This document shows, piece after piece, positions 14,950-60,602 of a stretch of DNA of 64,000 nucleotides. The stretch is from Eukaryota sp. TZLM1-RC (lineage: Eukaryota; Protista; Metamonada: BaSk clade). Under the pieces are notes generated by a model. The model was not told where the DNA came from. It made no database searches and saw only the letters and a list, made by a program, of their open reading frames with translations. Both the position numbers and the translations under genes were made by a program. Within the stretch, counting starts at the first letter, position 1. Each line of letters begins with the position of its first letter. Where the stretch lies: assembly GCA_040285825.1 (NCBI GenBank), contig JAUPSS010000005.1:1798001-1862000 (forward strand). Direction: 5' to 3'.

Positions 14950-17900
14950 TTTTATTTAACAAAAAATATGAGATACACAATTAAAACTCCACATCCTCAA
15001 AACCTGCCTCCCCTACATCAAAAAAATTAATTGCTAAAGATTCAGAAAATTTCCCAAAAGAAGATAGTGAATCAGAAATTAGTTTTACCATTCCCTTAAA
15101 AATAGAAAATACAATCCTGTTTTGCCAATAAACACGATTGAAAATTCTTCTAGTTCTTTCCTTTACAACTATAACAAAATTCTCAAGGAAAGCAATAGCA
15201 GCCTTACCTAGAGATCCAAGCAATGAAACAACAAAGGGACATAAATTATATTGGGCATGAGAATTTTCATTAACCGAGGAAATGGGTTACGTATATTTAG
15301 CAATTTTATATTTTTCGCCTGCAAGAAGAGGATTATTTACATCGGAGTTAATGAGATGTTCGTTAGAGGAATTACAAGGATCAATAGACATGGCGTCCAA
15401 AATAGTAAAACTACCATTTAAACCAGGAACAACTAGATCACCTCTTGTCAGACCCATGGATGCTCTGTTGTAATGCGTACTATCAATATTGGGATCATCA
15501 AGAATTAATTTTGATAACAACGGCTCTAAAAAGGAATCTACTCGATATGATTTGCACATTACATAAATTTGGTCCCTGACGTTATTATACACTTTGCTTC
15601 TAAACGTAATGAAATGTTTACAGTTCAAAAGATGAGTAAACAAAAGAGGTTTACCACATTTACAAGTTAAATGATTGGGCAAATTGTTTGGCCACAGAAA
15701 ACAACGAAAACGCATGTTTAGAAGCCATTCATTGTTTTTTAAACAAAAGTCCATAAACAGAGGGAACTTGAGTTACTAAAGCAGCAGCTGAACTATCACG
15801 AATATCCTTTAAAAAATTACCGAAAGCGGGATTTTTAGTTTTGGCCAAGCCAAGTCTTACTTCGTAATGCAAGCCTTCATATAATTTAACCAGATGGTGC
15901 TGAAGCTTTTTCAAGCAAAAACGTAAATTTGGAAGTGATCGGGTGGGAATTTCTTGAACATTTTGAGGAAAACACTGAATCCAGATATCACTAGGCAAAT
16001 TATCTTATTCGATTTGAAGTTGATTCAAATAAAAATTTGATTCACCATGGATCAGATGAACATCATAAGGAAACCTTGGAAAAAATTCAAAAACAAAATA
16101 TTTTCCACCTCCTAAAAAAGCTGCTTTACATAAAATCGAAGATTTCGTGAAACCAATTCCACCTAAATCAGTAGAACAAAAAACATGACTTCGAATTAAA
16201 GATTCATTTACCTCCAATAATGAGGAAAAAAATTTGACCCGAAGTTTGTTGAAGGATCTACAAAAATCAAGAGACACTGAAGGAGGAGTTGACCTTAAAA
16301 TATGAGTGAATTTTCCAGAATAACAAATTTTTAAAATGAAAAATTTGATGTGTTTTTCAATATCAAATTCAGCAATAAAACTAAGATCCTTGTCAAAATT
16401 TTCCAATAAATTGTTCAATTGGGAATAAATTTCATCCAAATTACCTAACCAACATCCAAGAAACTTGAACGCTTGTTGTTCATAATTAATGAAAGGAATT
16501 TGAACATCATCAATCAATAGAGATTGTTTTGTTCTTCCAATCAAGAGGCATTTTGTGGGATTCAAGGCTAATCCAATGTCTTTGTATTTCGCAGCAATGC
16601 CTTCAGAAACCCTACAAATGCTTTCATAAGAACCAATAATCGAAATGTCATCCATATAAGCAACAATACGTAACTCAGGGAATTCTTTCTGGGTCAATTC
16701 AATAGTATCATGAATAGCCAAACAAACAAGCAATGGACCAAGAGGATCACCTTGTTTGACACCAGAAAAGATTCAAGGGTAAAGGTGTCAAAGATTAAGT
16801 CCGACTTTTTTCCATATAATAAGTAAAAATAGGCTGAAAGTTCTGGAAATTTTTGAAGAAGGACATCGTAAATGCAATTACGTTTTACTGAATCAAAGGC
16901 ATTTTTAAAGTCCAAATTGAAAATATATTGATGTTGCTGACTATTGAAAAAACATCTGAAGTCATTGAGGCAACCGATGCACCTTCAATAGTTTTAATGC
17001 CAAATTGAAAAGGTTTCAAATAGTCCCTTGCCTTAGTAGAAATTCTATTGAAAATAATAGAAGAACGCAACCTGGTTAAAGACTCTCCAATAGCAATTGG
17101 TCTAACTCCATCGGGTTTGTTACTTTATCCTGGTTTAACTAAAGCAACTAACCGGGCAGCAGTCAATTCAGGCGGAGGAACATAATTCAAAGACATTAAA
17201 CTTTGAAAATAAATGGCAAGATCCTCAAAAATTTCTGGAGTATTTTTACAAGCAGTTTTTAACAAATCAAAAGAAATGCCTGAGGAACCAGCAGCTTTTC
17301 CTTTTGGCAATTTAGCAATAGCATTGAATACTTCTTGAGCCTGAAAAGGATTTTCGAGCCAATATTCACAAATTGGCGGCTTAAGTGGGCAAAAATTTTC
17401 AGTTGGATGAAGCGCTTTCAGTTTTTCAACAGTTTCATAATTATTATCAGCCAACTTACCTGAAAAATATTTTTTAAACCACTTCCATATCTACCTCTCA
17501 AGAACAATTTTCTTGATTGAAACGATGAACTGGTTTTACTTTTTTTCGGTTTGTAATTAATTGATTTTTTATTCTTTTTGGCAAAGAATTTCCAAAATCG
17601 TGTTATGTTCCATTTGTTTGAATTTAATTGAAAAAAACGCATTTCCATTGACACAGGAACAGATCTGACAGGACTCACCTCTACAAGAATTTTAACAGGT
17701 CCACGAAGAGAATCACTTGTTTGACAGTCAAAACAAAACAAGAGAGGGCGACCATTGGAAGAATTAGAGAGGAACTTTTTGCAAAAAGGACAATTATGTT
17801 TCAAGACAATATCCGTAGGATCAGGAGCAACAGTTTTTGGTAAATGTGTTTGATCAATATTTAAATCATAATTAACATCATCAGCAGAAACATTGGGAAC

Positions 17901-18323
17901 AAGAGGAAGATTTAGTGCGGATGACGTTTGCAAACAATTAACAATAGAAATATTTGTTTTCAGTCTCACTTTTTCGGTAATAATATCAGGACATTTTCTA
18001 ATGTTGTGACCAACCTTGCCACATTTGGAACAGGTATGTCTTCTTTTTTGCACTTTTTCAGGTGTAACATCAGGGGCATCACACAAAGGCAAAAACTCTT
18101 TTTTAAAAAATTTCAAATCTGAAATTTACTCATTCTTTTGCTCATCAGTTTTTCTTTTCAAAGGATTTGCATACTCTTTTCTCTTTTTGTTGAAAATCTT
18201 GTCAGGAGGGAGAAATTGGCCATCATGAGTTTGGTAAAAATGACCACACTGATAGGTTCCAAGATCAAAGCACATAACAGTGAAAAGACTTTGACTTGGG
18301 GTCATTGATTTGAATTGAATCAA
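14950..18323 (-). mobile_element. Decayed near full-length CRE-like RLE non-LTR retrotransposon (no RNase H seen)
   Basis: In order: CSKCGKVGHNIRKC knuckle, KGKAAGSSG, ARLVALVKP, FQFGI, DFKNAFDSV, AYMDD, LGGIGF, CKCGKPLLFTHLLNC, RGDLVVPG..ILD, KIAKY. AATAAA/A-rich tail at ~14950. Multiple frameshifts and stops. Confidence 0.9.
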
Positions 18324-45248: not shown

Positions 45249-46337
45249 TACCTGGTTGATCCTGCCAGTAGGCATATGCTTGTCTCAAAGATTAAGCCAT
45301 GCATGTCTAAGTTCAGGAGTTTTCTCCGAAACAGCGAATGGCTCATTAAATCAGTGATAATTTATTTGATAGTACTTACTACTTGGATAACCGTGGTAAT
45401 TCTAGAGCTAATACATGCAGCAAATACTTCTTTTGAAGTATGCATTTATTAGATACAAAACCAATCCTGGCAACAGGTCTTTGGTGAATCATAATAACTA
45501 TGCTGATCGCATGTCTTCGGACAGCGACATATCATTTAAATCACTGCCCTATCAACTAAATCGTAAGGTAGTGGCTTACGATGGTGATGACGGGTAACGG
45601 GGAATTAGGGTTTGATTCCGGAGAGGGAGCCTGAGAAATGGCTACCACATCCAAGGAAGGCAGCAGGCGCGAAAATTACCCAATCTCATTACGAGGAGGT
45701 AGTGACAAAAAATAACAATACTGGGCTCTTTTGAGTTCGTAATTGGAATGAGTACAACTTAAAACCTTTAACGAGGAGCTACTAGAGGGCAAGTCTGGTG
45801 CCAGCAGCCGCGGTAATTCCAGCTCTAGTAGTGTATCTTAAAATTGCTGCGTTTAAATCGTCCGTAGTTGAATCTCAGAATTTGCGTATCTTCAGGTTTT
45901 CCTGTTGGTAAACAGATTCTTCTGTCTGAGGACACTAGTCATTTGCTTCGGCGGTGGCTATTGAATTCAGACCGTTTACTTTGAAAAAATTAGAGTGTTC
46001 AAAGCAGGCTTTATGCAATTGAATAACTTAGCATGGAATAATAGAATAGGACTTTGGTTCTGTTTTATTGGTTTTGAGAACTAGAGTAATGATTAAAAGG
46101 GACAGTTGGGGGCATTAGTACTCCGGTGTCAGAGGTGAAATTCTTGGATTGCCGGATGACTAACTACTGCGAAAGCATTTGCCAAAGATGTTCTCATTAA
46201 TCAAGGTCGAAAGTTGGGGGATCGAAGACGATTAGACACCGTCGTAGTCTCAACCATAAACTATGCCGACTAGGGATTAGTAGGCGTTAAATACGACCCT
46301 ATTAGCACCTTATGGGAAACCATAAGTTCTTGGGTAA

Positions 46338-46396
<59 letters not shown>

Positions 46397-46845
46397 TTGT
46401 GGAGCCTGCGGCTTAATCTGACTCAACACGGAGAAACTTACCAGGTCCAGACGTGATAAGGATTGACAGATTGATAGCTCTTTCATGATCTTACGGTTAG
46501 TGGCGCATGGCCGTTCTTAGTTGGTGGAGTGATTTGTCTGGTTAATTCCGATAACGAACGAGATCTAAATTGCTAACTAGTTTTATTCTATTTTCGGATA
46601 GTTTGAACTTCTTAGCGAGACTGCTGTGGTTTTACACAGAGGAAGGTTTAGGCAATAACAGGTCTGTGATGCCCTTAGATGTTCTGGGCCGCACGCGCGC
46701 TACAATGGTAGGTACAACGAGTTTGTCCTTAACCGAAAGGTTTGGGTAATCTTGTGAATACCTATCTTGACTGGGATAGATCCTTGCAATTATGGGTCTT
46801 GAACGAGGAATAACTTGTAAGTGCATGTCATCAGCATGCGCTGAA

Positions 46846-46891
<46 letters not shown>

Positions 46892-47030
46892 GATGTTGAG
46901 GTGAAATGTTTGGACTCAATGGGTTAAGCTGCAAAGCAAGACTTGTTGGGAAAATTCAGTGAATCTTTGCATCTAGAGGAAGGAGAAGTCGTAACAAGGT
47001 ATCCGTAGGTGAACCTGCGGATGGATCATT
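45249..47030 (+). rRNA. 18S rRNA
   Basis: TACCTGGTTGATCCTGCCAG start, GTGCCAGCAGCCGCGGTAA, TTGTACACACCGCCC, GAACCTGCGGATGGATCATT end. Confidence 0.99.
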
Positions 47031-47128
47031 GTCGTTTGTGAGCTTGGCTTGCCAAGTTTCACTTTAACTGAAACCTAATACCGAACCAACCCTTTTTATT
47101 ATAAAAACTAATAGTTTCTATGAAACAT
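47031..47128 (+). other. ITS1 (~100 bp)
   Basis: Lies between the 18S end and the 5.8S start. Confidence 0.85.
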
Positions 47129-47291
47129 CCAACTTTCAGTGATGGATGTCTCGGCTCCTTTATCGATGAAGAACGCAGCGAATTGCGATACGTAATGTGA
47201 ATTGCAGAATCTGTGAATCATCGAAACTTTGAACGCAAATGGTAGTTCTTTAGAGCTTCGGCTTTATTGAACTATACTTGAATCAGCGTCG
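47129..47291 (+). rRNA. 5.8S rRNA
   Basis: AACTTTCAGTGATGGATGTCTCGGCTC, TCGATGAAGAACGCAGCG, GAATTGCAGAAT, CTTTGAACGCA. Ends approximate. Confidence 0.97.
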
Positions 47292-47448: not shown

Positions 47449-47798
47449 TTCGACCTGATTTCAAGTAAGATCACCCCCTGGACTTAAGCATATCAATAAG
47501 GGGAGGAAAAGAAAATAACTATGATTTCCTTAGTAGCGGCGAGCGAACAGGAAAAAGCTCAAGACTGAATCTTTATGATCTTTAGATTGTGAAGAGTTGT
47601 AGTCTATGGAAACCAGTATTCGGTTCTCGATGTATAAGTCCTTTGGAAAAGGGTATCATGGAAGGTGAAAATCCTGTAAATGACATCGAAGTAATTGATT
47701 CACTACTGATTTTCCGAGAGTCGCGCTGTTTGGGAATGCAGCGTTAAATGTGGGGTAAGTTTCCCATAAAGCTAAATATAAAAGGAGACCGATAGTTC

Positions 47799-47829
<31 letters not shown>

Positions 47830-48670
47830 TCTGAAGAGAGAGTTAAAAGTACCTGAAATCACTGAAAGGATAAGCGATTGGAACTTGATATTGATAGCTT
47901 CGGCTGTCTTGCGTTGGAGTGATTTTGAAAATTGAGTGATTGTGGGGAAGGTAGCTATAATGAACTTCGGTTTATTGTAGTGTTATAGCCTCATAAATTG
48001 TTCTTTTTAAGAATCAGGAATACGGTTTTACCGAGACTCCAACATAAAAGGTTCAATTGTCCCGTCTTGAAACACGGACCAAGGAGTGTATCTCTTCTGC
48101 AAGTCGTAGGGTGTAAAAACCTGAAGGCGAAATGAAAGTAATTTTATGAGGGGAAGTTTCGACTGCACCCTCAACCAGTCCTTGCAAAGGGATCTGAGTA
48201 TGAGCAGAATGGATACGACCCGAAAGCCGCTGAACTATGCCTGAATAGGATGAAGCCAGGGGAAACTCTGGTGGAAGTCCGTAGCGATGTTGACGTGCAA
48301 ATCACTCGTCAAATTTGGGTATAGGGGCGAAAGACTCATCGAAGCGGCTAGTAGCTGGTTACGTTCGAAGTTTCCCCCAGGATAGCTGGAGCTTGTTTTA
48401 GTTTTGTCCGGTAAAGCTAATGATTAGAGGTACTAGGGACGCAATGTCCTTAGCCTATTCTCAAACTTTAAATGGGCAAGATTTGTGATGATACTTAAGT
48501 GATCGTTGCAATTGAATAATAGCTCTAAGTGGGCCATTTTTGGTAAGCAGAACTGGCGATGTGGGATGCTCCAAAAGACATGTTAAGGTGCCTAAGTGTG
48601 CACTCATTTAGACCCCAGAAAAGGTGTTGGTTGATATTGACAGCAGGACGGTGGCCATGGAAGTCGGAAT

Positions 48671-48704
<34 letters not shown>

Positions 48705-49614
48705 TCAACTAGCCCTGAAAATTGATGGCGCTAAAGTGTGCCACCTATACATGTCCATTAATTCATTTTATGAGTTAATGTGTAGAACGTCGTGGGGGTT
48801 GCGTAGAAGGTTCATTGTGAAATGGACTGGAGCAGCCTCTAGTGCAGATCTTGGTGGTAGTAGCAAATAAACAAGTTGGAATCTTGTTGACCGAAGTGGA
48901 GTAGGGTTCCATGGTAAAGGTATTCTGCCATGGGTTAGTCGGTCCTAAGGCACAGGTTAACTCTTTGAGAGGGGGCTTTTATAGCTCCGTCCTGTCGAAA
49001 GGGAAGCAGGTTAATATTCCTGCACCAACAGTGGGTGTTCGTGGTAACACAATCGAATCTAGAGATGTCGGGGAGGATCCTGGGAAGAGTTATCTTTTCT
49101 TATTAACTGTCTATTGTCCATGGAATCTGTTTAACAGGAGAAGTGGATATAAGATAGGAAGAGCATTACGTTTTTGTAATGTCCGGTGTATTCTCAACGG
49201 CCCTTGAAAATCTAGAGGAGTAATCACTTCATTGTTGTCCGTACCGATAACCGCATCAGGTCTCCAAGGTGTGTAGCCTCTGGTCTATAGAAGAACGTAG
49301 GTAAGGGAAGTCGGCAAAATAGATCCGTAACTTCGGGATAAGGATTGGCTCTAGGGGCCTTGTGTAAGAGCCCTAGTGGTGACGCACTGAGCGTTGATGT
49401 GATTGGCAACAATTGCGTTGATGCGAGGTGTTGATCCATTGGGATTACTTTTATGCAATTAAAGGTCAACCTAGAACTGTAACGGACAAAGGGAACCCGA
49501 CTGTTTAATCGAAACAAAGCTTTCTGATGGCCGGAAACGGTGTTGACAGAAAGTGATTTCTGCTCAGTGCTCTGAATGTCATTGTGAAGAGATTCAATCA
49601 AGCACGGGTAAACA

Positions 49615-49659
<45 letters not shown>

Positions 49660-49660
49660 C

Positions 49661-49693
<33 letters not shown>

Positions 49694-49715
49694 GTTCCCA
49701 CTGTCCCTACCTACC

Positions 49716-49751
<36 letters not shown>

Positions 49752-49757
49752 TAATTC

Positions 49758-49795
<38 letters not shown>

Positions 49796-50154
49796 TGATA
49801 TTGTGAACCGATTCAGGAGGTGTAGCGTACAGGGGAGTAGATTTATCTACGCCAATGAAACACCCTGACTCTTGACATTGGTTTGCTAACTTAATTAATC
49901 CGAAACAGGTTTCCTGTTTCAAGATTTAAGTGTCTTCGGATACGATCGGATTTAAGGACATTGTCAGATGGGGAGTTTGGCTGGGGCGGCACATCTCCAA
50001 AATAATAACGGAGGTGTCCTAAGGTGAGCTCAATGAGAACAGAAATCTCATGTAGAACATAAGGGTAAAAGCTCACTTGATTTTGATTTTCAGTATGAAT
50101 ACAAACCAAGAAATTGTGGCCTAACGATCCTTTAACTATAAGAAACTTTTAGCT

Positions 50155-50197
<43 letters not shown>

Positions 50198-50299
50198 AGC
50201 CAAGCGTTCATAGCGACGTTGCTTTTTGATTCTTCGATGTCGGCTCTTCCTATCATTGAGAAGCAGAATTCTCAAAGCGTTGGATTGTTCACCCATTAA

Positions 50300-50355
<56 letters not shown>

Positions 50356-50751
50356 AATAATTGTCATCCTAATAGTAAAGCAACCCAGTACGAGAGGAAC
50401 CGTTGTTTCGCATAATTGGTATTTACGCTTATCTGAAAAGATATTGGTGTGAAGCTAACATGCGTTGGATTATAGCTGAACGCCTCTAAGCTAGTATCCA
50501 ACCTAGAAAGGATGATATATTGACCTGCAAATTTAATCGATAAAGATTAGGATTGTGTTTACACAGTCCCAATATCTCATCAGTGGGATTGATGTTTAGT
50601 CTAAGTACTATTCATTGATCATTGAAACTATGAAGATTCGCAGGATCATGAAACCTTGGCAGACGACCAAGATACGGAACTCATTGCTGTAAGTGTAAGA
50701 GTATGGTTTTTATACGATTTACTGAGGCTCATATGAAGTTCCTAGTTTCGT
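47449..50751 (+). rRNA. 28S rRNA (uninserted copy)
   Basis: CTTAAGCATATCAATAAG, CCGTCTTGAAACACGGACC, CTCTTAAGGTAGCCAAATG (R2 site, empty), GAGACAGGTTAGTTTTACCCTACTG, sarcin-ricin loop AGTACGAGAGGAAC. Ends approximate. Confidence 0.99.
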
Positions 50752-53700
50752 ATATTGACCAATGGTTGTTTATTACAATCATTGGTCAAATCTTTAAAGT
50801 CCATTTTGGGACAATTAATATAACAATTGTGGTGTTAAAGTCCGTGCTATGGTCATTTGATTAGTCATTGGTATGATTGGTTGAATGGTCATTGGTATGA
50901 TTAGATGAGTTGCATGTAGTCTTTATGTACTAGATGTGATCAACTTGTGATCAAACTTTGTGTGAAATTGTGTGTTAGTAATGTTGGCTATGTGTTACTT
51001 GATCAGTACAAACTCATGATTACATTTTCAAATGATTTTGTATATATTTGAATTAATTGAGTGTATTAATTTTTAAACATTAAATTGTAAAAAAAGTAAA
51101 AAATCAAAAAGTATACAATTGAATGTTGTAAACTAATAAAACAATTGCTGTAAGTGTAAGAGTATCGTTTTTGATACGATTTACTGAGGCTCATATGAAG
51201 TTCCTAGTTTCGTATATTGACCAATGGTTGTTTATTACAATCATTGGTCAAATCTTTAAAGTCCATTTTGGGACAATTAATATAACAATTGTGGTGTTAA
51301 AGTCCGTGCTATGGTCATTTGATTAGTCATTGGTATGATTGGTTGAATGGTCATTGGTATGATTAGATGAGTTGCATGTAGTCTTTATGTACTAGATGTG
51401 ATCAACTTGTGATCAAACTTTGTGTGAAATTGTGTGTTAGTAATGTTGGCTATGTGTTACTTGATCAGTACAAACTCATGATTACATTTTCAAATGATTT
51501 TGTATATATTTGAATTAATTGAGTGTATTAATTTTTAAACATTAAATTGTAAAAAAGTAAAAATCAAAAAGTATACAATTGAATGTTGTAAACTAATAAA
51601 ACAATTGCTGTAAGTGTAAGAGTATCGTTTTTGATACGATTTACTGAGGCTCATATGAAGTTCCTAGTTTCGTATATTGACCAATGGTTGTTTATTACAA
51701 TCATTGGTCAAATCTTTAAAGTCCATTTTGGGACAATTAATATAACAATTGTGGTGTTAAAGTCCGTGCTATGGTCATTTGAGTAGTCATTGGTATGATT
51801 GGTTGAATGGTCATTGGTATGATTAGATGAGTTGCATGTAGTCTTTATGTACTAGATGTGATCAACTTGTGATCAAACTTTGTGTGAAATTGTGTGTTAG
51901 TAATGTTGGCTATGTGTTACTTGATCAGTACAAACTCATGATTACATTTTCAAATGATTTTGTATATATTTGAATTAATTGAGTGTATTAATTTTTAAAC
52001 ATTAAATTGTAAAAAAAGTGAAAAATCAAAGTATACAATTGAATGTTGTAAACTAATAAAACAATTGCTGTAAGTGTAAGAGTATCGTTTTTGATACGAT
52101 TTACTGAGGCTCATATGAAGTTCCTAGTTTCGTATATTGACCAATGGTTGTTTATTACAATCATTGGTCAAATCTTTAAAGTCCATTTTGGGACAATTAA
52201 TATAACAATTGTGGTGTTAAAGTCCGTGCTATGGTCATTTGATTAGTCATTGGTATGATTGGTTGAATGGTCATTGGTATGATTAGATGAGTTGCATGTA
52301 GTCTTTATGTACTAGATGTGATCAACTTGTGATCAAACTTTGTGTGAAATTGTGTGTTAGTAATGTTGGCTATGTGTTACTTGATCAGTACAAACTCATG
52401 ATTACATTTTCAAATGATTTTGTATATATTTGAATTAATTGAGTGTATTAATTTTTAAACATTAAATTGTAAAAAAAGTAAAAAATCAAAAAGTATACAA
52501 TTGAATGTTGTAAACTAATAAAACAATTGCTGTAAGTGTAAGAGTATCGTTTTTGATACGATTTACTGAGGCTCATATGAAGTTCCTAGTTTCGTATATT
52601 GACCAATGGTTGTTTATTACAATCATTGGTCAAATCTTTAAAGTCCATTTTGGGACAATTAATATAACAATTGTGGTGTTAAAGTCCGTGCTATGGTCAT
52701 TTGATAGTCATTGGTATGATTGGTTGAATGGTCATTGGTATGATTAGATGAGTTGCATGTAGTCTTTATGTACTAGATGTGATCAACTTGTGATCAAACT
52801 TTGTGTGAAATTGTGTGTTAGTAATGTTGGCTATGTGTTACTTGATCAGTACAAACTCATGATTACATTTTCAAATGATTTTGTATATATTTGAATTAAT
52901 TGAGTGTATTAATTTTTAAACATTAAATTGTAAAAAAGTAAAAAATCAAAAAGTATACAATTGAATGTTGTAAACTAATAAAACAATTGCTGTAAGTGTA
53001 AGAGTATCGTTTTTGATACGATTTACTGAGGCTCATATGAAGTTCCTAGTTTCGTATATTGACCAATGGTTGTTTATTACAATCATTGGTCAAATCTTTA
53101 AAGTCCATTTTGGGACAATTAATATAACAATTGTGGTGTTAAAGTCCGTGCTATGGTCATTTGATAGTCATTGGTATGATTGGTTGAATGGTCATTGGTA
53201 TGATTAGATGAGTTGCATGTAGTCTTTATGTACTAGATGTGATCAACTTGTGATCAAACTTTGTGTGAAATTGTGTGTTAGTAATGTTGGCTATGTGTTA
53301 CTTGATCAGTACAAACTCATGATTACATTTTCAAATGATTTTGTATATATTTGAATTAATTGAGTGTATTAATTTTTAAACATTAAATTGTAAAAAAGTA
53401 AAAATCAAAAAGTATACAATTGAATGTTGTAAACTAATAAAACAATTGCTGTAAGTGTAAGAGTATCGTTTTTGATACGATTTACTGAGGCTCATATGAA
53501 GTTCCTAGTTTCGTATATTGACCAATGGTTGTTTATTACAATCATTGGTCAAATCTTTAAAGTCCATTTTGGGACAATTAATATAACAATTGTGGTGTTA
53601 AAGTCCGTGCTATGGTCATTTGATTAGTCATTGGTATGATTGGTTGAATGGTCATTGGTATGATTAGATGAGTTGCATGTAGTCTTTATGTACTAGATGT

Positions 53701-55616
53701 GATCAACTTGTGATCAAACTTTGTGTGAAATTGTGTGTTAGTAATGTTGGCTATGTGTTACTTGATCAGTACAAACTCATGATTACATTTTCAAATGATT
53801 TTGTATATATTTGAATTAATTGAGTGTATTAATTTTTAAACATTAAATTGTAAAAAAGTAAAAATCAAAAAGTATACAATTGAATGTTGTAAACTAATAA
53901 AACAATTGCTGTAAGTGTAAGAGTATCGTTTTTGATACGATTTACTGAGGCTCATATGAAGTTCCTAGTTTCGTATATTGACCAATGGTTGTTTATTACA
54001 ATCATTGGTCAAATCTTTAAAGTCCATTTTGGGACAATTAATATAACAATTGTGGTGTTAAAGTCCGTGCTATGGTCATTTGATAGTCATTGGTATGATT
54101 GGTTGAATGGTCATTGGTATGATTAGATGAGTTGCATGTAGTCTTTATGTACTAGATGTGATCAACTTGTGATCAAACTTTGTGTGAAATTGTGTGTTAG
54201 TAATGTTGGCTATGTGTTACTTGATCAGTACAAACTCATGATTACATTTTCAAATGATTTTGTATATATTTGAATTAATTGAGTGTATTAATTTTTAAAC
54301 ATTAAATTGTAAAAAAGTAAAAATCAAAAAGTATACAATTGAATGTTGTAAACTAATAAAACAATTGCTGTAAGTGTAAGAGTATCGTTTTTGATACGAT
54401 TTACTGAGGCTCATATGAAGTTCCTAGTTTCGTATATTGACCAATGGTTGTTTATTACAATCATTGGTCAAATCTTTAAAGTCCATTTTGGGACAATTAA
54501 TATAACAATTGTGGTGTTAAAGTCCGTGCTATGGTCATTTGATTAGTCATTGGTATGATTGGTTGAATGGTCATTGGTATGATTAGATGAGTTGCATGTA
54601 GTCTTTATGTACTAGATGTGATCAACTTGTGATCAAACTTTGTGTGAAATTGTGTGTTAGTAATGTTGGCTATGTGTTACTTGATCAGTACAAACTCATG
54701 ATTACATTTTCAAATGATTTTGTATATATTTGAATTAATTGAGTGTATTAATTTTTAAACATTAAATTGTAAAAAAAGTAAAAAATCAAAAAGTATACAA
54801 TTGAATGTTGTAAACTAATAAAACAATTGCTGTAAGTGTAAGAGTATCGTTTTTGATACGATTTACTGAGGCTCATATGAAGTTCCTAGTTTCGTATATT
54901 GACCAATGGTTGTTTATTACAATCATTGGTCAAATCTTTAAAGTCCATTTTGGGACAATTAATATAACAATTGTGGTGTTAAAGTCCGTGCTATGGTCAT
55001 TTGATTAGTCATTGGTATGATTGGTTGAATGGTCATTGGTATGATTAGATGAGTTGCATGTAGTCTTTATGTACTAGATGTGATCAACTTGTGATCAAAC
55101 TTTGTGTGAAATTGTGTGTTAGTAATGTTGGCTATGTGTTACTTGATCAGTACAAACTCATGATTACATTTTCAAATGATTTTGTATATATTTGAATTAA
55201 TTGAGTGTATTAATTTTTAAACATTAAATTGTAAAAAAAGTAAAAAATCAAAAAGTATACAATTGAATGTTGTAAACTAATAAAACAATTGCTGTAAGTG
55301 TAAGAGTATCGTTTTGATACGATTTACTGAGGCTCATATGAAGTTCCTAGTTTCGTATATTGACCAATGGTTGTTTATTACAATCATTGGTCAAATCTTT
55401 AAAGTCCATTTTGGGACAATTAATATAACAATTGTGGTGTTAAAGTCCGTGCTATGGTCATTTGATTAGTCATTGGTTGAATGGTCATTGGTATGATTAG
55501 ATGAGTTGCATGTAGTCTTTATGTACTAGATGTGATCAACTTGTGATCAAACTTTGTGTGAAATTGTGTGTTAGTAATGTTGGCTATGTGTTACTTGATC
55601 AGTACAAACTCATGAT
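50683..55616 (+). repeat. ~461-bp satellite, ~10.7 copies; first unit overlaps the 28S 3' end
   Basis: Same unit as 28971-42846. It starts within 28S at ATTGCTGTAAG and is cut at ...AAACTCATGAT. Confidence 0.98.
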
Positions 55617-58600
55617 GTCCTATCTCCCTGTTCCCACCGCCATTGTATGAGGCAGACATCTCTTACAGGGTTTTTTATGCCCTCAAAGTCTCAACCTTCT
55701 TTATCTCCTTCAGAATTCTCTTCTCTTTTGGAAGGTCTAGAAGAGTCCAACATGACTGCCGATGTCAGCGGCATCGAGCAGAATAGCCCTAGTGCTATAG
55801 AGCTGTCCGTGGCAGATTCTCATGAATCTGGCCGAAATCTAGTGTTGGCTTCTTCCTATGACCAAACTCCACATTTATATGCGGAAGATAAGTCCTCTTT
55901 CTCCATTTCACAACTTACCTCTGATGACCCACCCACTTCCTCCGATCAACTTTGCACTGACCCTTCCTCAGATTCTTTCAATCACATTTCTCCAATCTCC
56001 GTTTCAGACGCTACTGAATTCTCTCTTCAAACAGCGCACTCTGATCCAGATAGTTCTCACCTTGCAACTCCATATGATAGTTATCAGCGCTCACCTGGTC
56101 TAGTGGATAAGACCTTTGACTCAGAGGTTGCGGTCCTGAGTTCGAATCCCACCACACGCACATTGTCTAGTGCCTCTCCATTGGGAGGTGCTAATTCCAG
56201 CGATTCTCGTAGTGAGCTTCGGCTCGCTACAAATAACCACTGTGGTGGGAAGGGGGGTTTTTGCTCTGTGTCCCTTTGTGATGATCCCCTCTCTGCTGAT
56301 CTCCAAAATTTAGACCAAATTTCAGGTGTTTGTCAAAATCGTAGAGAAAGAAAGTTCTGCTGCTTTGTCTCGCTCTGCCCCAGAACTGAACCGTTCTCTA
56401 AGCGGTCTGGGTTGACAAGGCATTTGATGAAAATGCATCCTGATGTCAGCCTTGATGTCTTAAAAGCCAATGGATACACAAGATGTAGCTGCTCTGACAT
56501 CATTTCTGTAGAAGGCATCGGGATGCATATAACTAAGAAAGGTTGTGCATTTTCTCTCAGTGAATCTGTCAATAATTCAGAGAGTCCTCTTCTTCCTTCT
56601 GAGGACTCTCCTATTCAATTGTACCATCAACCGATTAACCCAAGCCAACGTTATGGTCTTGGGTTTGGGTATCAACAGGGCCCTCTTGTGACTGAACCTG
56701 TTCGAGATATTTCACATCCACCTGTTTGTCCTTCTGACCTTGATAGTTCTCCTGTTGTCTCTTTTGATGCCAATGATGATGGTGATGAATCTAATCCAAT
56801 CATACTTCCTGATGACGATGGCCACATACTTGAATCGAATGCTTCCTCTGATATGGATGTTAATGTGAATCCCTTGGAGATTTACACAGATGGATCTTTT
56901 CTCAAGAAAAGAAATAAATCTGGCTTTGGGGGCTTTTATACTTTCAAGGATAAGCGATTCGAAATTTATGGCCCATCACGCCACAACACCCATAACGCAG
57001 CTGAGTTTGAAGCTGTTTTGATGACCATTAAATCCTTAGTGTTGCTCTCTCACTGTCCACAACACATTATCATTTTTTCTGACAGTAGCCTTGTTGTTGA
57101 TTCTCTTAACCTAAAAGCATCCCTAAAGAATCCTACTGTCAAAAGAATCCGCAGCCAAATAAAGGATCTCATAAATAGTTCTCGTTTTAGACTATTCTCC
57201 TTCTCCTTTAAGAAAGTGTTGGCACATTCTGACAATACCAATAATAATGTTGCTGATGTTTTAGCAAAACGTGGCGCTAATGGCTCTGAATGTTCACTGC
57301 TGAAGTATTTAAGAACACGTTATCATGTCCTTGAAGGCCCTATACCACTTTGTTCATTACCACCTGACCACTGTGAACACATTGCTGATAGTGATCCCCT
57401 TGACTCGTCCATTTTAGAAAAATCACACAATTGTCCTATCTGTCCCAGTTTCTTTTCCAAAGCAAGATCCTTATGCTGCCATATTGATACGCACCACTCC
57501 TCTATAGACACTGACACATTACACATTAATAATCTGGTTCGCTGCCCAGTTTGCTTGAAGGTATTCTCATCGGTTGGTTTTGACAACCATTTCAAACGTC
57601 ATGAGTCACCGACTCTAGATATGCCCTGTATTTCTGATTCTTTATTTATTCAGCTGAGCAATGAAATTGCAAGCTTCACTTACAAACGGCTCAGTGATCG
57701 TCCCTCATTCCGCTCTGCAGTCAAGTTGGTCACCCATTCTTCCCTGCCAATGGAACAAAAATGTAGATATCTTCTAGTGCTACCGGTAGTTTGCCTAAAG
57801 CTGGACAAAGGCTCATCACTTTTTAAACTTTTCCGATTCCAACACAGGGTTCACAAATTTAATATTGGTCAATGCGAAGATACTTCTTCCTTCTTTTGTA
57901 ACACAACCCCCATCAGACCACATACATTTAGCAATCGAGTCAATATAAAGAGAGTCAAAGAACTTATTCACGACAACGAACTGAGTCGCGCTATGAATCT
58001 GCTATCAAGAGAACCACCAACAGCAAACATAACTAATAACTCCATGCTAGAGCAATTGCAACACCTCCATCCAGCTGATCCAAATTTTTGTCAATATAAC
58101 AATATGCTAACTGAACACTACTCCTACCACGACTCCTCTTCCGTAGCTGACGCAATCCTTAATTCCCCTATGACGGAAGGTGGCCCCTCCCACTGGCATG
58201 CCAAACTTTTGAAACAGTGTATTGATGACCACTTGGTGTCATGTGTACAGTATATAGCAAACGGCCTGCTCAGTGGCAAAATAAGTGAGCCCCTCAGACG
58301 TGTTCTCACTTCCAGTAGATTGCTCGCCATCCCAAAGAAAAGTAATGGAGTGCGGCCCTTGGCAGTTGGAGAACTATTTTACCGCATTGCTGCCGGCCTT
58401 GCGCTATCTAAAGTAAATGTTGACTATTTGATCAATTCAAATCAATATGGCGTGAAAGTCCCTGGTGGTGGTGAAGCTATTGTCCATTCAATTCGTAGTA
58501 ATCTAGGCCTATCTTTCGAAAAACTGATCAAGTTTGATGTGCGCAATGCATTCAATGAGGTCGATCGTTGTCAGCTTGCCCAAGCTGTTGCTGAATATTG

Positions 58601-60201
58601 TCCTTTGCTGTTCCCATTCTTTAAAGCTAGCTATCTGAGCCCTTCCACATTACATTTTAGAAACTCAGTTATTTTCTCAGAACGTGGTGTTCGACAAGGC
58701 GATCCCCTCGGTCCCTTGCTATTTTCAACTGCCCTTGTCCCGTTTACAACACAGCTCCGTACCCTGCACCCATCCTGTCATTTTTATTTGTATTTAGATG
58801 ACCTCTTTGTTCTTTGCAACGACCATGAAACTGATGCTATTGTTGGGACTGTTTCAAGCTTTATCCAAGACATTGGTCTTGAAGTCAATCTTGACAAAAC
58901 TGCTGTTGTCTCTAGCAATGACAATTTCGAGGTGCTTGGTGCACATTTTGGCCCAAACGCCGAAGATGATCTTTCAAGCTCACTCCCACCAATGACTAGT
59001 TCTCTGTTGAAATGTCTCGAATCGCTGACGTTACAAGAGCAATTGCTTCTTGTGAGACACTGCATCAACACCAAACTGTCCTTTCATGCACGTGTTCATC
59101 GCCCAGCAGTCAGCAAGAATCCCCTCATTAGTTGTTTTCATCAAATAGTTTCTTTTGTTTCTTCGGCACTTGGGGTTGTTCCTTTGTTTCCTCAGTTGAT
59201 TTCTCTCCCGTCAGCCAGATTTGGAGGACTCGGTCTCACAAATTATGGGGAAATAGCTCATTTGTGCTTCGCAGCCTCCTACATCACCAGCAATAGGACT
59301 TTAAACCTCTTCCACTCTTCATTGCCACTTGATGATTTAGATCTTATGTGCGCTGAATCATTATTTCATGAACTTGGTACAGCTACCAACTCCCCCAACT
59401 TATCAAAACTTCAAGCTCTCTTAACTCAAAACCACTTTTTGGAGACTCTGAATTCTTTGACTAGGGACTTTAGATCCAAGCCTGCTGTACTCGCTTCATT
59501 TAGGTCGCCGGTAACTGACCCAGCCATAGCACCCATCCCAATCAAATATGAAAACGACGTTCTAATCAATTGCAAACCACTGTCTCAATCACTTTTATTT
59601 ATCAATCCATCTGAGGAACCTGTTGACGATTCATTGCTCAAGTATTTCTTAAGAACCCGCCTCCTCTGTTCTGAATTTGTACATCACTGTCCCTTTTGTA
59701 AACATGAATCCAATTCTCAGTATCATTCAGCCAATTGCGAACAACTATCATCTATGCGAATTAGAAGACATGATGATGTGGTTGAATTGATATCGCAACT
59801 GACAGGCTTACTCAAAGAACAGAACGTAGGTAACGGCAGAGTTGACCTTATTCGTCCCGATGGCAGCGAGTGTTATGACCTCACTTTAGTCGGTGGATAT
59901 TCTACCCCTCTCAATACACTGATTGAACGCCGTAGAATGTCGAAAATTGGTAAATATTCTCACCATGTTCCTTTGGTTCCACTAATCGCATTTCCTTCTG
60001 GAGGCATCGAACGAAGTTTTGTAAATTTTTTGCGTAAAAAAGAGATAGGCTCTTATGGGAAAAAAATATCGCTGTCATTTATAAGATCATGCTTTAAAAT
60101 GAGCAAAGTGTATGCCCGACTTGCCATTTGTGATCTTAGTGATGATTGATCGCTTTAGTTATAGTTTCTTCATTGTGATTGAACATTTCTTTCTTTAATA
60201 A
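55617..60201 (+). mobile_element. RLE-type (CRE-like) non-LTR retrotransposon with RNase H, 3'-joined to 28S rDNA
   Basis: Single intact ORF, 30-nt leader and ~52-nt 3' UTR ending in AATAAA, followed immediately by 28S sequence matching 50352 onward. Confidence 0.95.
55647..60149 (+). CDS. 1500-aa retrotransposon protein: PIP box, zinc fingers, RNase H, zinc fingers, reverse transcriptase, CCHC knuckle, restriction-like endonuclease
   Basis: QTSLTGFF; C2H2/C2HC fingers ~56355-56546; IYTDGS..NAAEFEA..FSDS..AHSD..NVADVLAK ~56874-57280; two C2H2 fingers ~57432-57602; RPLAVGE, FDVRNAFN, GVRQGDPLGP, YLDD (58791), FGGLGL; CPFC..H..C, RRHDDVV, RVDLIRPD..YDLT, KIGKY. Confidence 0.97.
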   Translation: MRQTSLTGFFMPSKSQPSLSPSEFSSLLEGLEESNMTADVSGIEQNSPSAIELSVADSHESGRNLVLASSYDQTPHLYAEDKSSFSISQLTSDDPPTSSDQLCTDPSSDSFNHISPISVSDATEFSLQTAHSDPDSSHLATPYDSYQRSPGLVDKTFDSEVAVLSSNPTTRTLSSASPLGGANSSDSRSELRLATNNHCGGKGGFCSVSLCDDPLSADLQNLDQISGVCQNRRERKFCCFVSLCPRTEPFSKRSGLTRHLMKMHPDVSLDVLKANGYTRCSCSDIISVEGIGMHITKKGCAFSLSESVNNSESPLLPSEDSPIQLYHQPINPSQRYGLGFGYQQGPLVTEPVRDISHPPVCPSDLDSSPVVSFDANDDGDESNPIILPDDDGHILESNASSDMDVNVNPLEIYTDGSFLKKRNKSGFGGFYTFKDKRFEIYGPSRHNTHNAAEFEAVLMTIKSLVLLSHCPQHIIIFSDSSLVVDSLNLKASLKNPTVKRIRSQIKDLINSSRFRLFSFSFKKVLAHSDNTNNNVADVLAKRGANGSECSLLKYLRTRYHVLEGPIPLCSLPPDHCEHIADSDPLDSSILEKSHNCPICPSFFSKARSLCCHIDTHHSSIDTDTLHINNLVRCPVCLKVFSSVGFDNHFKRHESPTLDMPCISDSLFIQLSNEIASFTYKRLSDRPSFRSAVKLVTHSSLPMEQKCRYLLVLPVVCLKLDKGSSLFKLFRFQHRVHKFNIGQCEDTSSFFCNTTPIRPHTFSNRVNIKRVKELIHDNELSRAMNLLSREPPTANITNNSMLEQLQHLHPADPNFCQYNNMLTEHYSYHDSSSVADAILNSPMTEGGPSHWHAKLLKQCIDDHLVSCVQYIANGLLSGKISEPLRRVLTSSRLLAIPKKSNGVRPLAVGELFYRIAAGLALSKVNVDYLINSNQYGVKVPGGGEAIVHSIRSNLGLSFEKLIKFDVRNAFNEVDRCQLAQAVAEYCPLLFPFFKASYLSPSTLHFRNSVIFSERGVRQGDPLGPLLFSTALVPFTTQLRTLHPSCHFYLYLDDLFVLCNDHETDAIVGTVSSFIQDIGLEVNLDKTAVVSSNDNFEVLGAHFGPNAEDDLSSSLPPMTSSLLKCLESLTLQEQLLLVRHCINTKLSFHARVHRPAVSKNPLISCFHQIVSFVSSALGVVPLFPQLISLPSARFGGLGLTNYGEIAHLCFAASYITSNRTLNLFHSSLPLDDLDLMCAESLFHELGTATNSPNLSKLQALLTQNHFLETLNSLTRDFRSKPAVLASFRSPVTDPAIAPIPIKYENDVLINCKPLSQSLLFINPSEEPVDDSLLKYFLRTRLLCSEFVHHCPFCKHESNSQYHSANCEQLSSMRIRRHDDVVELISQLTGLLKEQNVGNGRVDLIRPDGSECYDLTLVGGYSTPLNTLIERRRMSKIGKYSHHVPLVPLIAFPSGGIERSFVNFLRKKEIGSYGKKISLSFIRSCFKMSKVYARLAICDLSDD

Positions 60202-60602
60202 ACTGAATAATTGTCATCCTAATAGTAAAGCAACCCAGTACGAGAGGAACCGTTGTTTCGCATAATTGGTATTTACGCTTATCTGAAAAGATATTGGTGT
60301 GAAGCTAACATGCGTTGGATTATAGCTGAACGCCTCTAAGCTAGTATCCAACCTAGAAAGGATGATATATTGACCTACAAATTTAATCGATAAAGATTAG
60401 GATTGTGTTTACACAGTCCCAATATCTCATCAGTGGGATTGATGTTTAGTCTAAGTACTATTCATTGATCATTGAAACTATGAAGATTCGCAGGATCATG
60501 AAACCTTGGTAGACGACCAAGATACGGAACTCATTGCTGTAAGTGTAAGAGTATCGTTTTTGATACGATTTACTGAGGCTCATATGAAGTTCCTAGTTTC
60601 GT
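60202..60602 (+). pseudogene. Orphan 3' fragment of 28S rRNA (~400 nt, includes the sarcin-ricin loop)
   Basis: Matches 50352-50751 except G50527>A60377, C50660>T60510 and a satellite-type terminal hairpin. Confidence 0.97.

Follow-up and report, generated by a model that had tools for sequence, protein, structure and literature searches.

Retrotransposons that lack long terminal repeats (non-LTR) and carry a restriction-like endonuclease (RLE), such as R2, serve as the model for target-primed reverse transcription and are under development for gene insertion. Some non-LTR elements possess their own ribonuclease H (RNase H). In the I-group, plant L1 and Dualen elements this domain lies downstream of the reverse transcriptase (RT), as it does in protein P0148 (AP endonuclease-RT-RNase H), and I-group and plant L1 elements use an apurinic/apyrimidinic (AP)-type endonuclease rather than an RLE, Dualen being the exception. 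The lack of an RNase H is a hallmark of R2, which has to displace its RNA template instead (reviewed in PMC13586686), and a 2026 survey of animal R2 diversity makes no mention of RNase H. In the oomycete element Utopia, a member of the NeSL clade, an RNase H is found upstream of the RT, a position described as 'unique' (Kojima and Jurka, 2015, PMC4640811). The Utopia domain is of the archaeal/plant type, with an Arg replacing the conserved His (PMC4640811), and the upstream architecture was confirmed in oomycetes only (Ustyantsev et al., PMC5348765). Here, we analyse a window of 64,000 nucleotides (nt) from contig JAUPSS010000005.1 (positions 1,798,001 to 1,862,000, forward strand; assembly GCA_040285825.1) of strain TZLM1-RC, the type strain of the metamonad Skoliomonas litria (PMC11603281). 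It contains an intact copy of an RLE-type (R2-like) non-LTR retrotransposon specific for the 28S gene of the ribosomal DNA (rDNA), in which a predicted RNase H precedes the RT and is enclosed by two zinc-finger modules. Literature searches found no description of a Skoliomonas retrotransposon and nothing usable on the exact target sequence or on the coordinates of the R4 and R5 sites, and none of the papers that could be searched couples Skoliomonas with reverse transcriptase.

Only one described group, oomycete Utopia, has a comparable upstream layout. A preliminary description of the locus, made from the sequence alone, had named Utopia as an upstream precedent with an archaeal-type domain, in agreement with the published account (PMC4640811). 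Like the Skoliomonas element, Utopia is RLE-type and site-specific, and has just one open reading frame (ORF), which encodes zinc fingers as well as an RNase H upstream of the RT. In contrast, Utopia inserts into U2 small nuclear RNA (snRNA) genes of oomycetes, whereas the target here is the 28S rDNA of a metamonad. The Utopia RNase H is Arg-type, whereas the Skoliomonas domain retains a His (H527), scores higher with PF00075 than with RVT_3 and higher with the canonical RNase HI model NF001236 than with archaeal RNase HI models. Unlike that of Utopia, it also sits between two paralogous finger modules. The element thus departs from Utopia in its target gene (28S and not U2 snRNA genes) and in the His that stands in place of Arg. 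The Skoliomonas family looks like a second, independent case of an RNase H located upstream of the RT, and differs from Utopia in RNase H type, target gene, eukaryotic supergroup and module duplication.

With R2, the element shares a single ORF encoding N-terminal zinc fingers, RT, a CCHC motif and RLE, as well as specificity for 28S. Its domain order is zinc-finger module, RNase H, zinc-finger module, RT, CCHC, RLE. The RT core matches RVT_1 at amino acids (aa) 895-1100 (E 1.4e-21, Pfam), and a profile running from the RT to the C-terminus, made from the element protein together with related sequences, aligns to solved R2 proteins across RT, CCHC and RLE with E 2e-43; when searched as a single sequence, the RT matches R2 weakly (E 4e-4). 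No AP endonuclease (Exo_endo_phos) and no Myb domain were detected in the ORF by Pfam, and an Rfam search of 55400-60400 gave neither a ribozyme nor any further RNA family at E <= 0.1. Related copies fall into three lineages: F1, the family of the window copy; F2, from the same genome (P0009, P0157, P0158; 44% identical); and a third from Skoliomonas sp. GEM-RC1 (P0010, P0011, P0169; 46-48% identical to F1). All three retain the RHD, D, D and K motifs of the endonuclease.

The window also holds a complete rDNA unit, with 18S at 45249-47031, 5.8S at 47131-47291 and 28S at 47451-50751 (Rfam), flanked by spacer repeats of 460 bp. The 3' untranslated region (UTR) of the element ends at 60201 and 28S resumes at 60202, a position equal to 50352 of the intact unit, which defines the insertion site as ACCCT^ACTGA; the sarcin-ricin loop sequence follows about 35 nt downstream. 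The same 3' junction, AATAA|ACTGA or AAAAA|ACTGA, is present in the window copy and in nine copies at five other loci from two species; these include two full-length F1 copies at locus L001, one full-length and one 5'-truncated F1 copy at L002, F2 copies at L003 and L005, and two GEM-RC1 copies at L004. Copies of F1, F2 and the GEM-RC1 family thus share sequence-specific insertion into a repeated gene. The site differs from that of R2, TAAGG^TAGCC, which lies several hundred nt upstream. Placement within the R2 clade proper, characterized by the R2 site and by N-terminal zinc fingers with a Myb domain, is disfavoured, given the position next to the sarcin-ricin loop and the failure of Pfam to detect the Myb domain expected in that clade.

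The preliminary description had recognized a complete RNase H with four acidic residues and a His loop, and this identification holds. PF00075 (RNase_H) matches aa 410-544 with E 5.8e-15 and 56.1 bits, against a curated cut-off of 25.8, whereas RVT_3 reaches 31 bits only (Pfam); the F2 and GEM-RC1 homologues score 67-69 bits on PF00075. All motifs could be located, namely IYTDGS at aa 412 (D415), AEFEA at aa 452 (E453), FSDS at aa 477 (D479), LAHSD (H527) and NVAD at aa 534 (D537), and the five residues occupy the invariant or near-invariant columns D21, E59, D85, H133 and D143 of a 108-sequence RNase H alignment. The active site (DEDD plus His) accordingly appears catalytically complete. Among NCBIfam models the best is NF001236, for canonical rnhA-type RNase HI, which scores 44.7 bits whereas the Thermoprotei model reaches 28.8 and the haloarchaeal one 19.8, and the closest solved relative by sequence is Chlorobium RNase HI (E 1.4e-8, PDB search).

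Structure prediction of aa ~410-545, proposed in the preliminary description, likewise yielded a type-1 RNase H. The AlphaFold2 model built from alignment A2 (108 sequences) has a mean pLDDT (predicted local distance difference test) of 92.3 and a pTM (predicted template modelling score) of 0.87, compared with a pLDDT of 34 in a single-sequence run. Its elements follow the order beta1-3, helix A, beta4, helix B, helix D, beta5, helix E, and all 50 of the top 50 structures returned by Foldseek are RNases H. The best superposition in VIA-align is on LC11-RNase H1 (4h8k; Z 18.2, root-mean-square deviation 2.3 over 132 residues), followed by Sulfolobus RNase HI (17.7), the catalytic domain of human RNase H1 (17.0), Chlorobium RNase HI (16.6), E. 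coli RNase HI (about 16) and HIV-1 RNase H (about 15). Only an eight-residue loop separates helix B (model residues 87-93) from helix D (102-115), so that helix C and the basic protrusion of the E. coli and human enzymes are absent from the model. For this reason, the model superposes marginally better on protrusion-less archaeal-type enzymes (Z 17-18.2) than on the human, Chlorobium and E. coli enzymes (16-17). The domain is therefore predicted to be a type-1, His-type RNase H without a basic protrusion and without a hybrid-binding domain (HBD). Cellular type-1 RNases H share its DEDD plus His residues and its fold, and its best sequence matches are RNase HI from Chlorobium and from E. coli along with RNase H1 proteins of the HBD type; the element domain stands apart in having no HBD, in lacking helix C and the basic protrusion by prediction, and in being part of a retrotransposon polyprotein. 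The preliminary description had seen a mixture of an archaeal-like DSSLVV string with a His-type loop; the combination of a His-type active site with a protrusion-less predicted fold stands, but sequence profiles assign the domain to canonical RNase HI and the DSSLVV string itself is not diagnostic.

Zinc-finger pairs had also been reported on either side of the RNase H. They correspond to modules 1 (aa 236-300) and 2 (aa 594-657), and the earlier span of 56355-57602 was accurate, the outer bounds of the modules being 56352 and 57617. The two modules match each other by BLASTP with E 9e-10 within GEM-RC1 and 5e-6 within the window protein, and are homologous beyond the Cys and His ligands, with shared linker residues. 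In four RT-RLE relatives outside Skoliomonas, a hidden Markov model (HMM) of the module detects just one copy, placed at the N-terminus or close to it (E 5e-5 to 3e-3). The distance from this single module to the YxDD motif of the RT is about 470-520 aa in P0180 and P0194, and that from module 2 to YxDD in F1 is about 455 aa. The similarity between modules and the single N-terminal copy of the outgroups lend support to the duplication of the finger module suggested earlier. The GEM-RC1 protein P0011 contains three finger modules, at aa 348-409 and 415-480 before the RNase H and at 786-851 after it, which suggests a further duplication or a chimeric gene model.

The order zinc-finger module, RNase H, zinc-finger module, RT, RLE was recovered in F1, F2 and GEM-RC1 (Pfam and finger-module HMM), so that a search for the same architecture, as envisaged in the preliminary description, finds it in three Skoliomonas lineages. 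Evidence for module 1 is weaker in F2: the L005 copy is 5'-truncated and lacks it, and the module 1 of L003 lies inside an F1-like 5' segment. The first ~1.1 kb of F1 and F2 (leader, N-terminal region and module 1) are 89-96% identical at the nt level (window 55617-56717 compared with L003:6518-7642 and L005:5464-5985), whereas the proteins are ~43% identical from ~150 nt before the RNase H onward, a disparity that indicates a recent exchange of the 5' module by recombination or template switch.

In an exhaustive phmmer search of 1.84 billion representative proteins, the RNase H region gave five matches better than E 1e-10, all from Skoliomonas, and no match outside the genus was better than E 2e-9. 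A word-indexed protein search with the RNase H domain alone returned no match, and the same search restricted to long proteins returned only the element's own cluster. For a placement with the CRE clade (CRE, SLACS, CZAR or GilM, with spliced-leader or telomeric targets), the only hint is a protein-atlas cluster whose few labelled members are mostly Euglenozoa, which is no more than a lead; the target here is 28S. The RT-RLE relatives outside Skoliomonas are 24-31% identical and originate from a Closterium, a Pyropia and metagenomes; the Pfam domains precomputed for them (RVT_1, sometimes with UCH, RFX, PHD or ankyrin) include no RNase H. Among the metagenomic relatives, P0174, P0176, P0186, P0188 and P0200 carry ubiquitin hydrolase, RFX DNA-binding, ankyrin and PHD domains, and in view of this variety domain capture seems frequent in the RT-RLE group.

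Conservation of the RNase H was compared with that of the rest of the protein. F1 is identical to F2 and GEM-RC1 at 46% and 49% of RNase H positions, respectively, at 52% and 51% of RT positions and at 40% and 55% of positions in the RLE region, whereas the two linkers flanking the RNase H are only 17-27% identical between lineages. The RNase H has thus been kept as strongly as the RT across three diverged lineages, all of which use one target site. Among 98%-identical F1 copies, the ratio of nonsynonymous to synonymous polymorphism (pN/pS) is 0.14-0.19 for the RNase H, 0.08-0.10 for the RT and 0.04-0.08 for finger module 2, against 0.5-2.7 for the linkers; with five to six substitutions in the RNase H, these ratios serve as supporting evidence only.

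The three RNase H lineages form one clade, with SH-aLRT (Shimodaira-Hasegawa-like approximate likelihood ratio test) support of 96 in a tree of 108 rows and support of 99/97 in one of 36 rows. The RNase H phylogeny suggested in the preliminary description thus recovers a Skoliomonas clade, with the deep forks unsupported. The nearest proteins outside the clade are stand-alone short RNases HI or HBD-type RNases H1, 30-39% identical, none of them linked to an RT. GEM-RC1 encodes a cellular RNase H1 (P0028) with two HBDs and an RNase H domain, and forcing P0028 as sister to the element clade was not rejected (approximately unbiased (AU) test, p-AU 0.54 in the 36-row tree, in which deep forks are mostly unsupported). 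We read the RNase H as a single lineage-specific N-terminal capture of a His-type domain without basic protrusion, since relatives outside the genus show no RNase H and at most one finger module, the latter in only four of them. The simplest history would be that an ancestral element with zinc finger, RT and RLE gained an N-terminal extension, consisting of a duplicate finger module and the RNase H, before the three lineages split. The independent capture proposed in the preliminary description is thus supported by the single clade of the three Skoliomonas lineages, by the lack of phmmer matches better than E 2e-9 outside the genus, by the RNase H-less RT-RLE relatives, by the presence of His where Utopia has Arg and by higher scores on canonical models than on RVT_3 or archaeal ones.

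Other origins have to be weighed against this capture. Inheritance from, or exchange with, another RNase H-bearing retroelement (Utopia, Dualen/RandI or I-group long interspersed nuclear elements) could hide behind the poorly supported deep placement of the Skoliomonas clade, where most forks are open and where the lone retroelement RNase H of the tree, P0148, falls in the same unsupported half, with Utopia unrepresented. We nevertheless regard it as improbable: the nearest matches outside Skoliomonas are stand-alone or HBD-bearing proteins and not RT-linked ones, the RT relatives outside the genus lack RNase H, an origin from the host RNase H1 was not rejected by the AU test, and the His-type domain, which fits canonical RNase HI models best, differs from the archaeal-type Arg-bearing domain of Utopia. 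We give very little credence to the RNase H being a dispensable passenger, or the fused ORF an artefact of assembly or annotation. For other copies, the gene models at NCBI are broken into pieces (1244, 1224, 990 and 681 aa), and frameshifts occur in several copies; however, the in-frame order recurs in the window copy, in at least four other TZLM1-RC contigs, in the GEM-RC1 assembly and in contigs of the independent runs X1 and X3, and all five catalytic residues are kept in F2 and GEM-RC1 at 42-49% overall identity, with RNase H conservation equal to that of the RT.

Taken as a whole, we consider it likely that an R2-like 28S element gained an N-terminal type-1 RNase H and a second finger module, and that this RNase H removes template RNA. 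The RLE would nick the 28S target and the RT would copy the element RNA through target-primed reverse transcription; next, the built-in RNase H would degrade the RNA strand of the RNA:cDNA hybrid and so make the cDNA available for second-strand synthesis. With the template RNA degraded, the second strand would not need to depend on strand displacement by the RT or on host RNase H1. Because the domain has no HBD and no predicted protrusion, holding its substrate is probably a task of the RT and/or the flanking fingers, much as retroviral RNase H depends on RT. Alternatively, the RNase H may act at the target, where it would clear rRNA:rDNA R-loops for the endonuclease or trim RNA to a defined second-strand primer, its activity being part of target recognition or second-strand priming. 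Circumstantial evidence in this direction comes from the position of the domain between two homologous DNA-binding modules instead of next to the RT, from a target within a highly transcribed gene and from the lack of a substrate-binding protrusion of its own, but the literature (PMC4640811, PMC5348765, PMC13586686) provided no precedent for a target-site role of RNase H, and we judge such a role unlikely. If true, it might connect to the upstream-target deletions seen at every examined 5' junction.

Several observations weigh against removal of template RNA by a currently active element. This role is extrapolated from RNase H in other retroelements, and GEM-RC1 has a cellular RNase H1 of its own (P0028); the related idea that the element compensates for a missing host RNase H1 was rejected for GEM-RC1, as P0028 is of the HBD type. 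The pN/pS of the RNase H rests on a small count of substitutions. A search for sequencing runs found no RNA run, the reads yielding DNA contigs only. Moreover, the 28S sequence directly upstream of the insertion site is retained in no examined copy of F1, F2 or GEM-RC1. The 5' junctions compared (window 55560-55650; L001:9260-9370 and 16610-16720; L002:9876-10050 and 16667-16780; L004:9880-10010) show 5' ends that abut the 460-bp spacer repeat at three phases, at window position 55616 and at the equivalents of 55376 and 55268, while GEM-RC1 5' ends abut 28S near position 540. This pattern points to several independent deletions of the upstream target or to an unusual 5'-joining step. The lack of an intact upstream target at the 5' junction is atypical for RLE elements, although such a junction does not define the family. 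Given that normal 5' junctions are absent, many copies may stem from duplication of the array, and ongoing retrotransposition is unproven.

The Skoliomonas elements are a natural family in which the R2-like core has been kept, an RNase H of its own with an apparently complete catalytic site has been added, and the 28S site is not that of R2. This strengthens the view that gain of RNase H is recurrent and modular in retroelements, and offers a comparison system in which to ask whether a built-in RNase H alters second-strand synthesis or the fidelity of the 5' junction. In addition, retrotransposons specific for rDNA are now on record from a deep-branching lineage of metamonads that was newly described. 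Coordinates of the features are collected in Table 1.

Table 1. Features of the F1 element copy and of its rDNA surroundings in the S. litria window.
Feature	Position	Strand	Details and evidence
F1 element copy	55617..60201	+	30-nt leader, ORF and 52-nt 3' UTR ending ...TTTAATAA; junction alignments
Single intact ORF of 1500 aa	55647..60149	+	Identical to NCBI-derived protein P0003; identity of 99-100% to NCBI proteins of 'Eukaryota sp. TZLM1-RC'
Zinc-finger module 1, aa 236-300	56352..56546	+	C2H2 finger, linker, RCxC...H...C finger
RNase H domain (predicted), aa 410-545	56874..57281	+	D415, E453, D479, H527, D537
Zinc-finger module 2, aa 594-657	57426..57617	+	Paralogue of module 1; holds the position that the lone module has in outgroup relatives
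Reverse transcriptase core (RVT_1), aa 895-1100	58329..58946	+	YLDD at aa 1049
CCHC motif (CPFC...H...C), from aa 1348	59688..59738	+	Motif located in ORF
RLE motifs RRHDD, RVDLI, YDLTLV, KIGKY, aa 1373-1437	59763..59957	+	R2 RLE profile alignment; kept in F2 and GEM-RC1
28S rRNA gene, 3' part, resuming at ACTGAATAATTG	60202..60601	+	Equals 50352 onward of intact unit
Sarcin-ricin loop sequence AGTACGAGAGGAAC	60235-60255	+	In 28S 3' part
460-bp spacer repeats	50683..55616	.	Adjoin element 5' end directly; upstream 28S missing

Element copies differ at their 5' ends. About 14 nt are missing from the 5' end of the window copy, whose ORF is nevertheless the intact one (compared with L001:9300-9314 and L003:6495-6517); other copies start with a T-run and CCCTGCAACTCAC, followed by GTCCTATCTCCC, and the T-run and CCCTGCAACTCAC are absent from the window copy. 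After the equivalent of window position 56200, the three full-length F1 copies examined at L001 and L002 carry an in-frame insertion of 24 nt (8 aa), as do the contigs from runs X1 and X3; the shorter variant is that of the window.

Further RT sequences are found in and around the rDNA. A relative of RLE type at L002:358-3171, 31% identical and with an annotated product of 1408 aa in which RVT_1 is the sole Pfam domain, has 18S sequence after it, starting at the equivalent of window position 46451; its visible part contains no RNase H and its N-terminus lies outside the locus. It may represent an 18S-specific sister family without RNase H. Outside the rDNA, the window contains degenerate RT fragments at 585-866 and 16029-17442, both on the minus strand, which are 37% and 24-28% identical to the element RT, respectively, and near which no RNase H was detected. 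The decayed relative at 14950-18323 had previously been noted to show no such domain, and a six-frame HMM scan indeed finds no RNase H elsewhere in the window.

The rDNA array has features of its own. Each 460-bp spacer repeat (e.g. 50683-50800) holds a ~118-nt copy of the 28S 3'-end region, and the array therefore appears to be built from duplications that included the 28S terminus. No 5S rRNA gene was found in the S. litria window, whereas in GEM-RC1 a 5S gene lies at L004:18470-18589, between the element-bearing 28S remnant and the next 18S, and is thus linked to the rDNA unit in that species.

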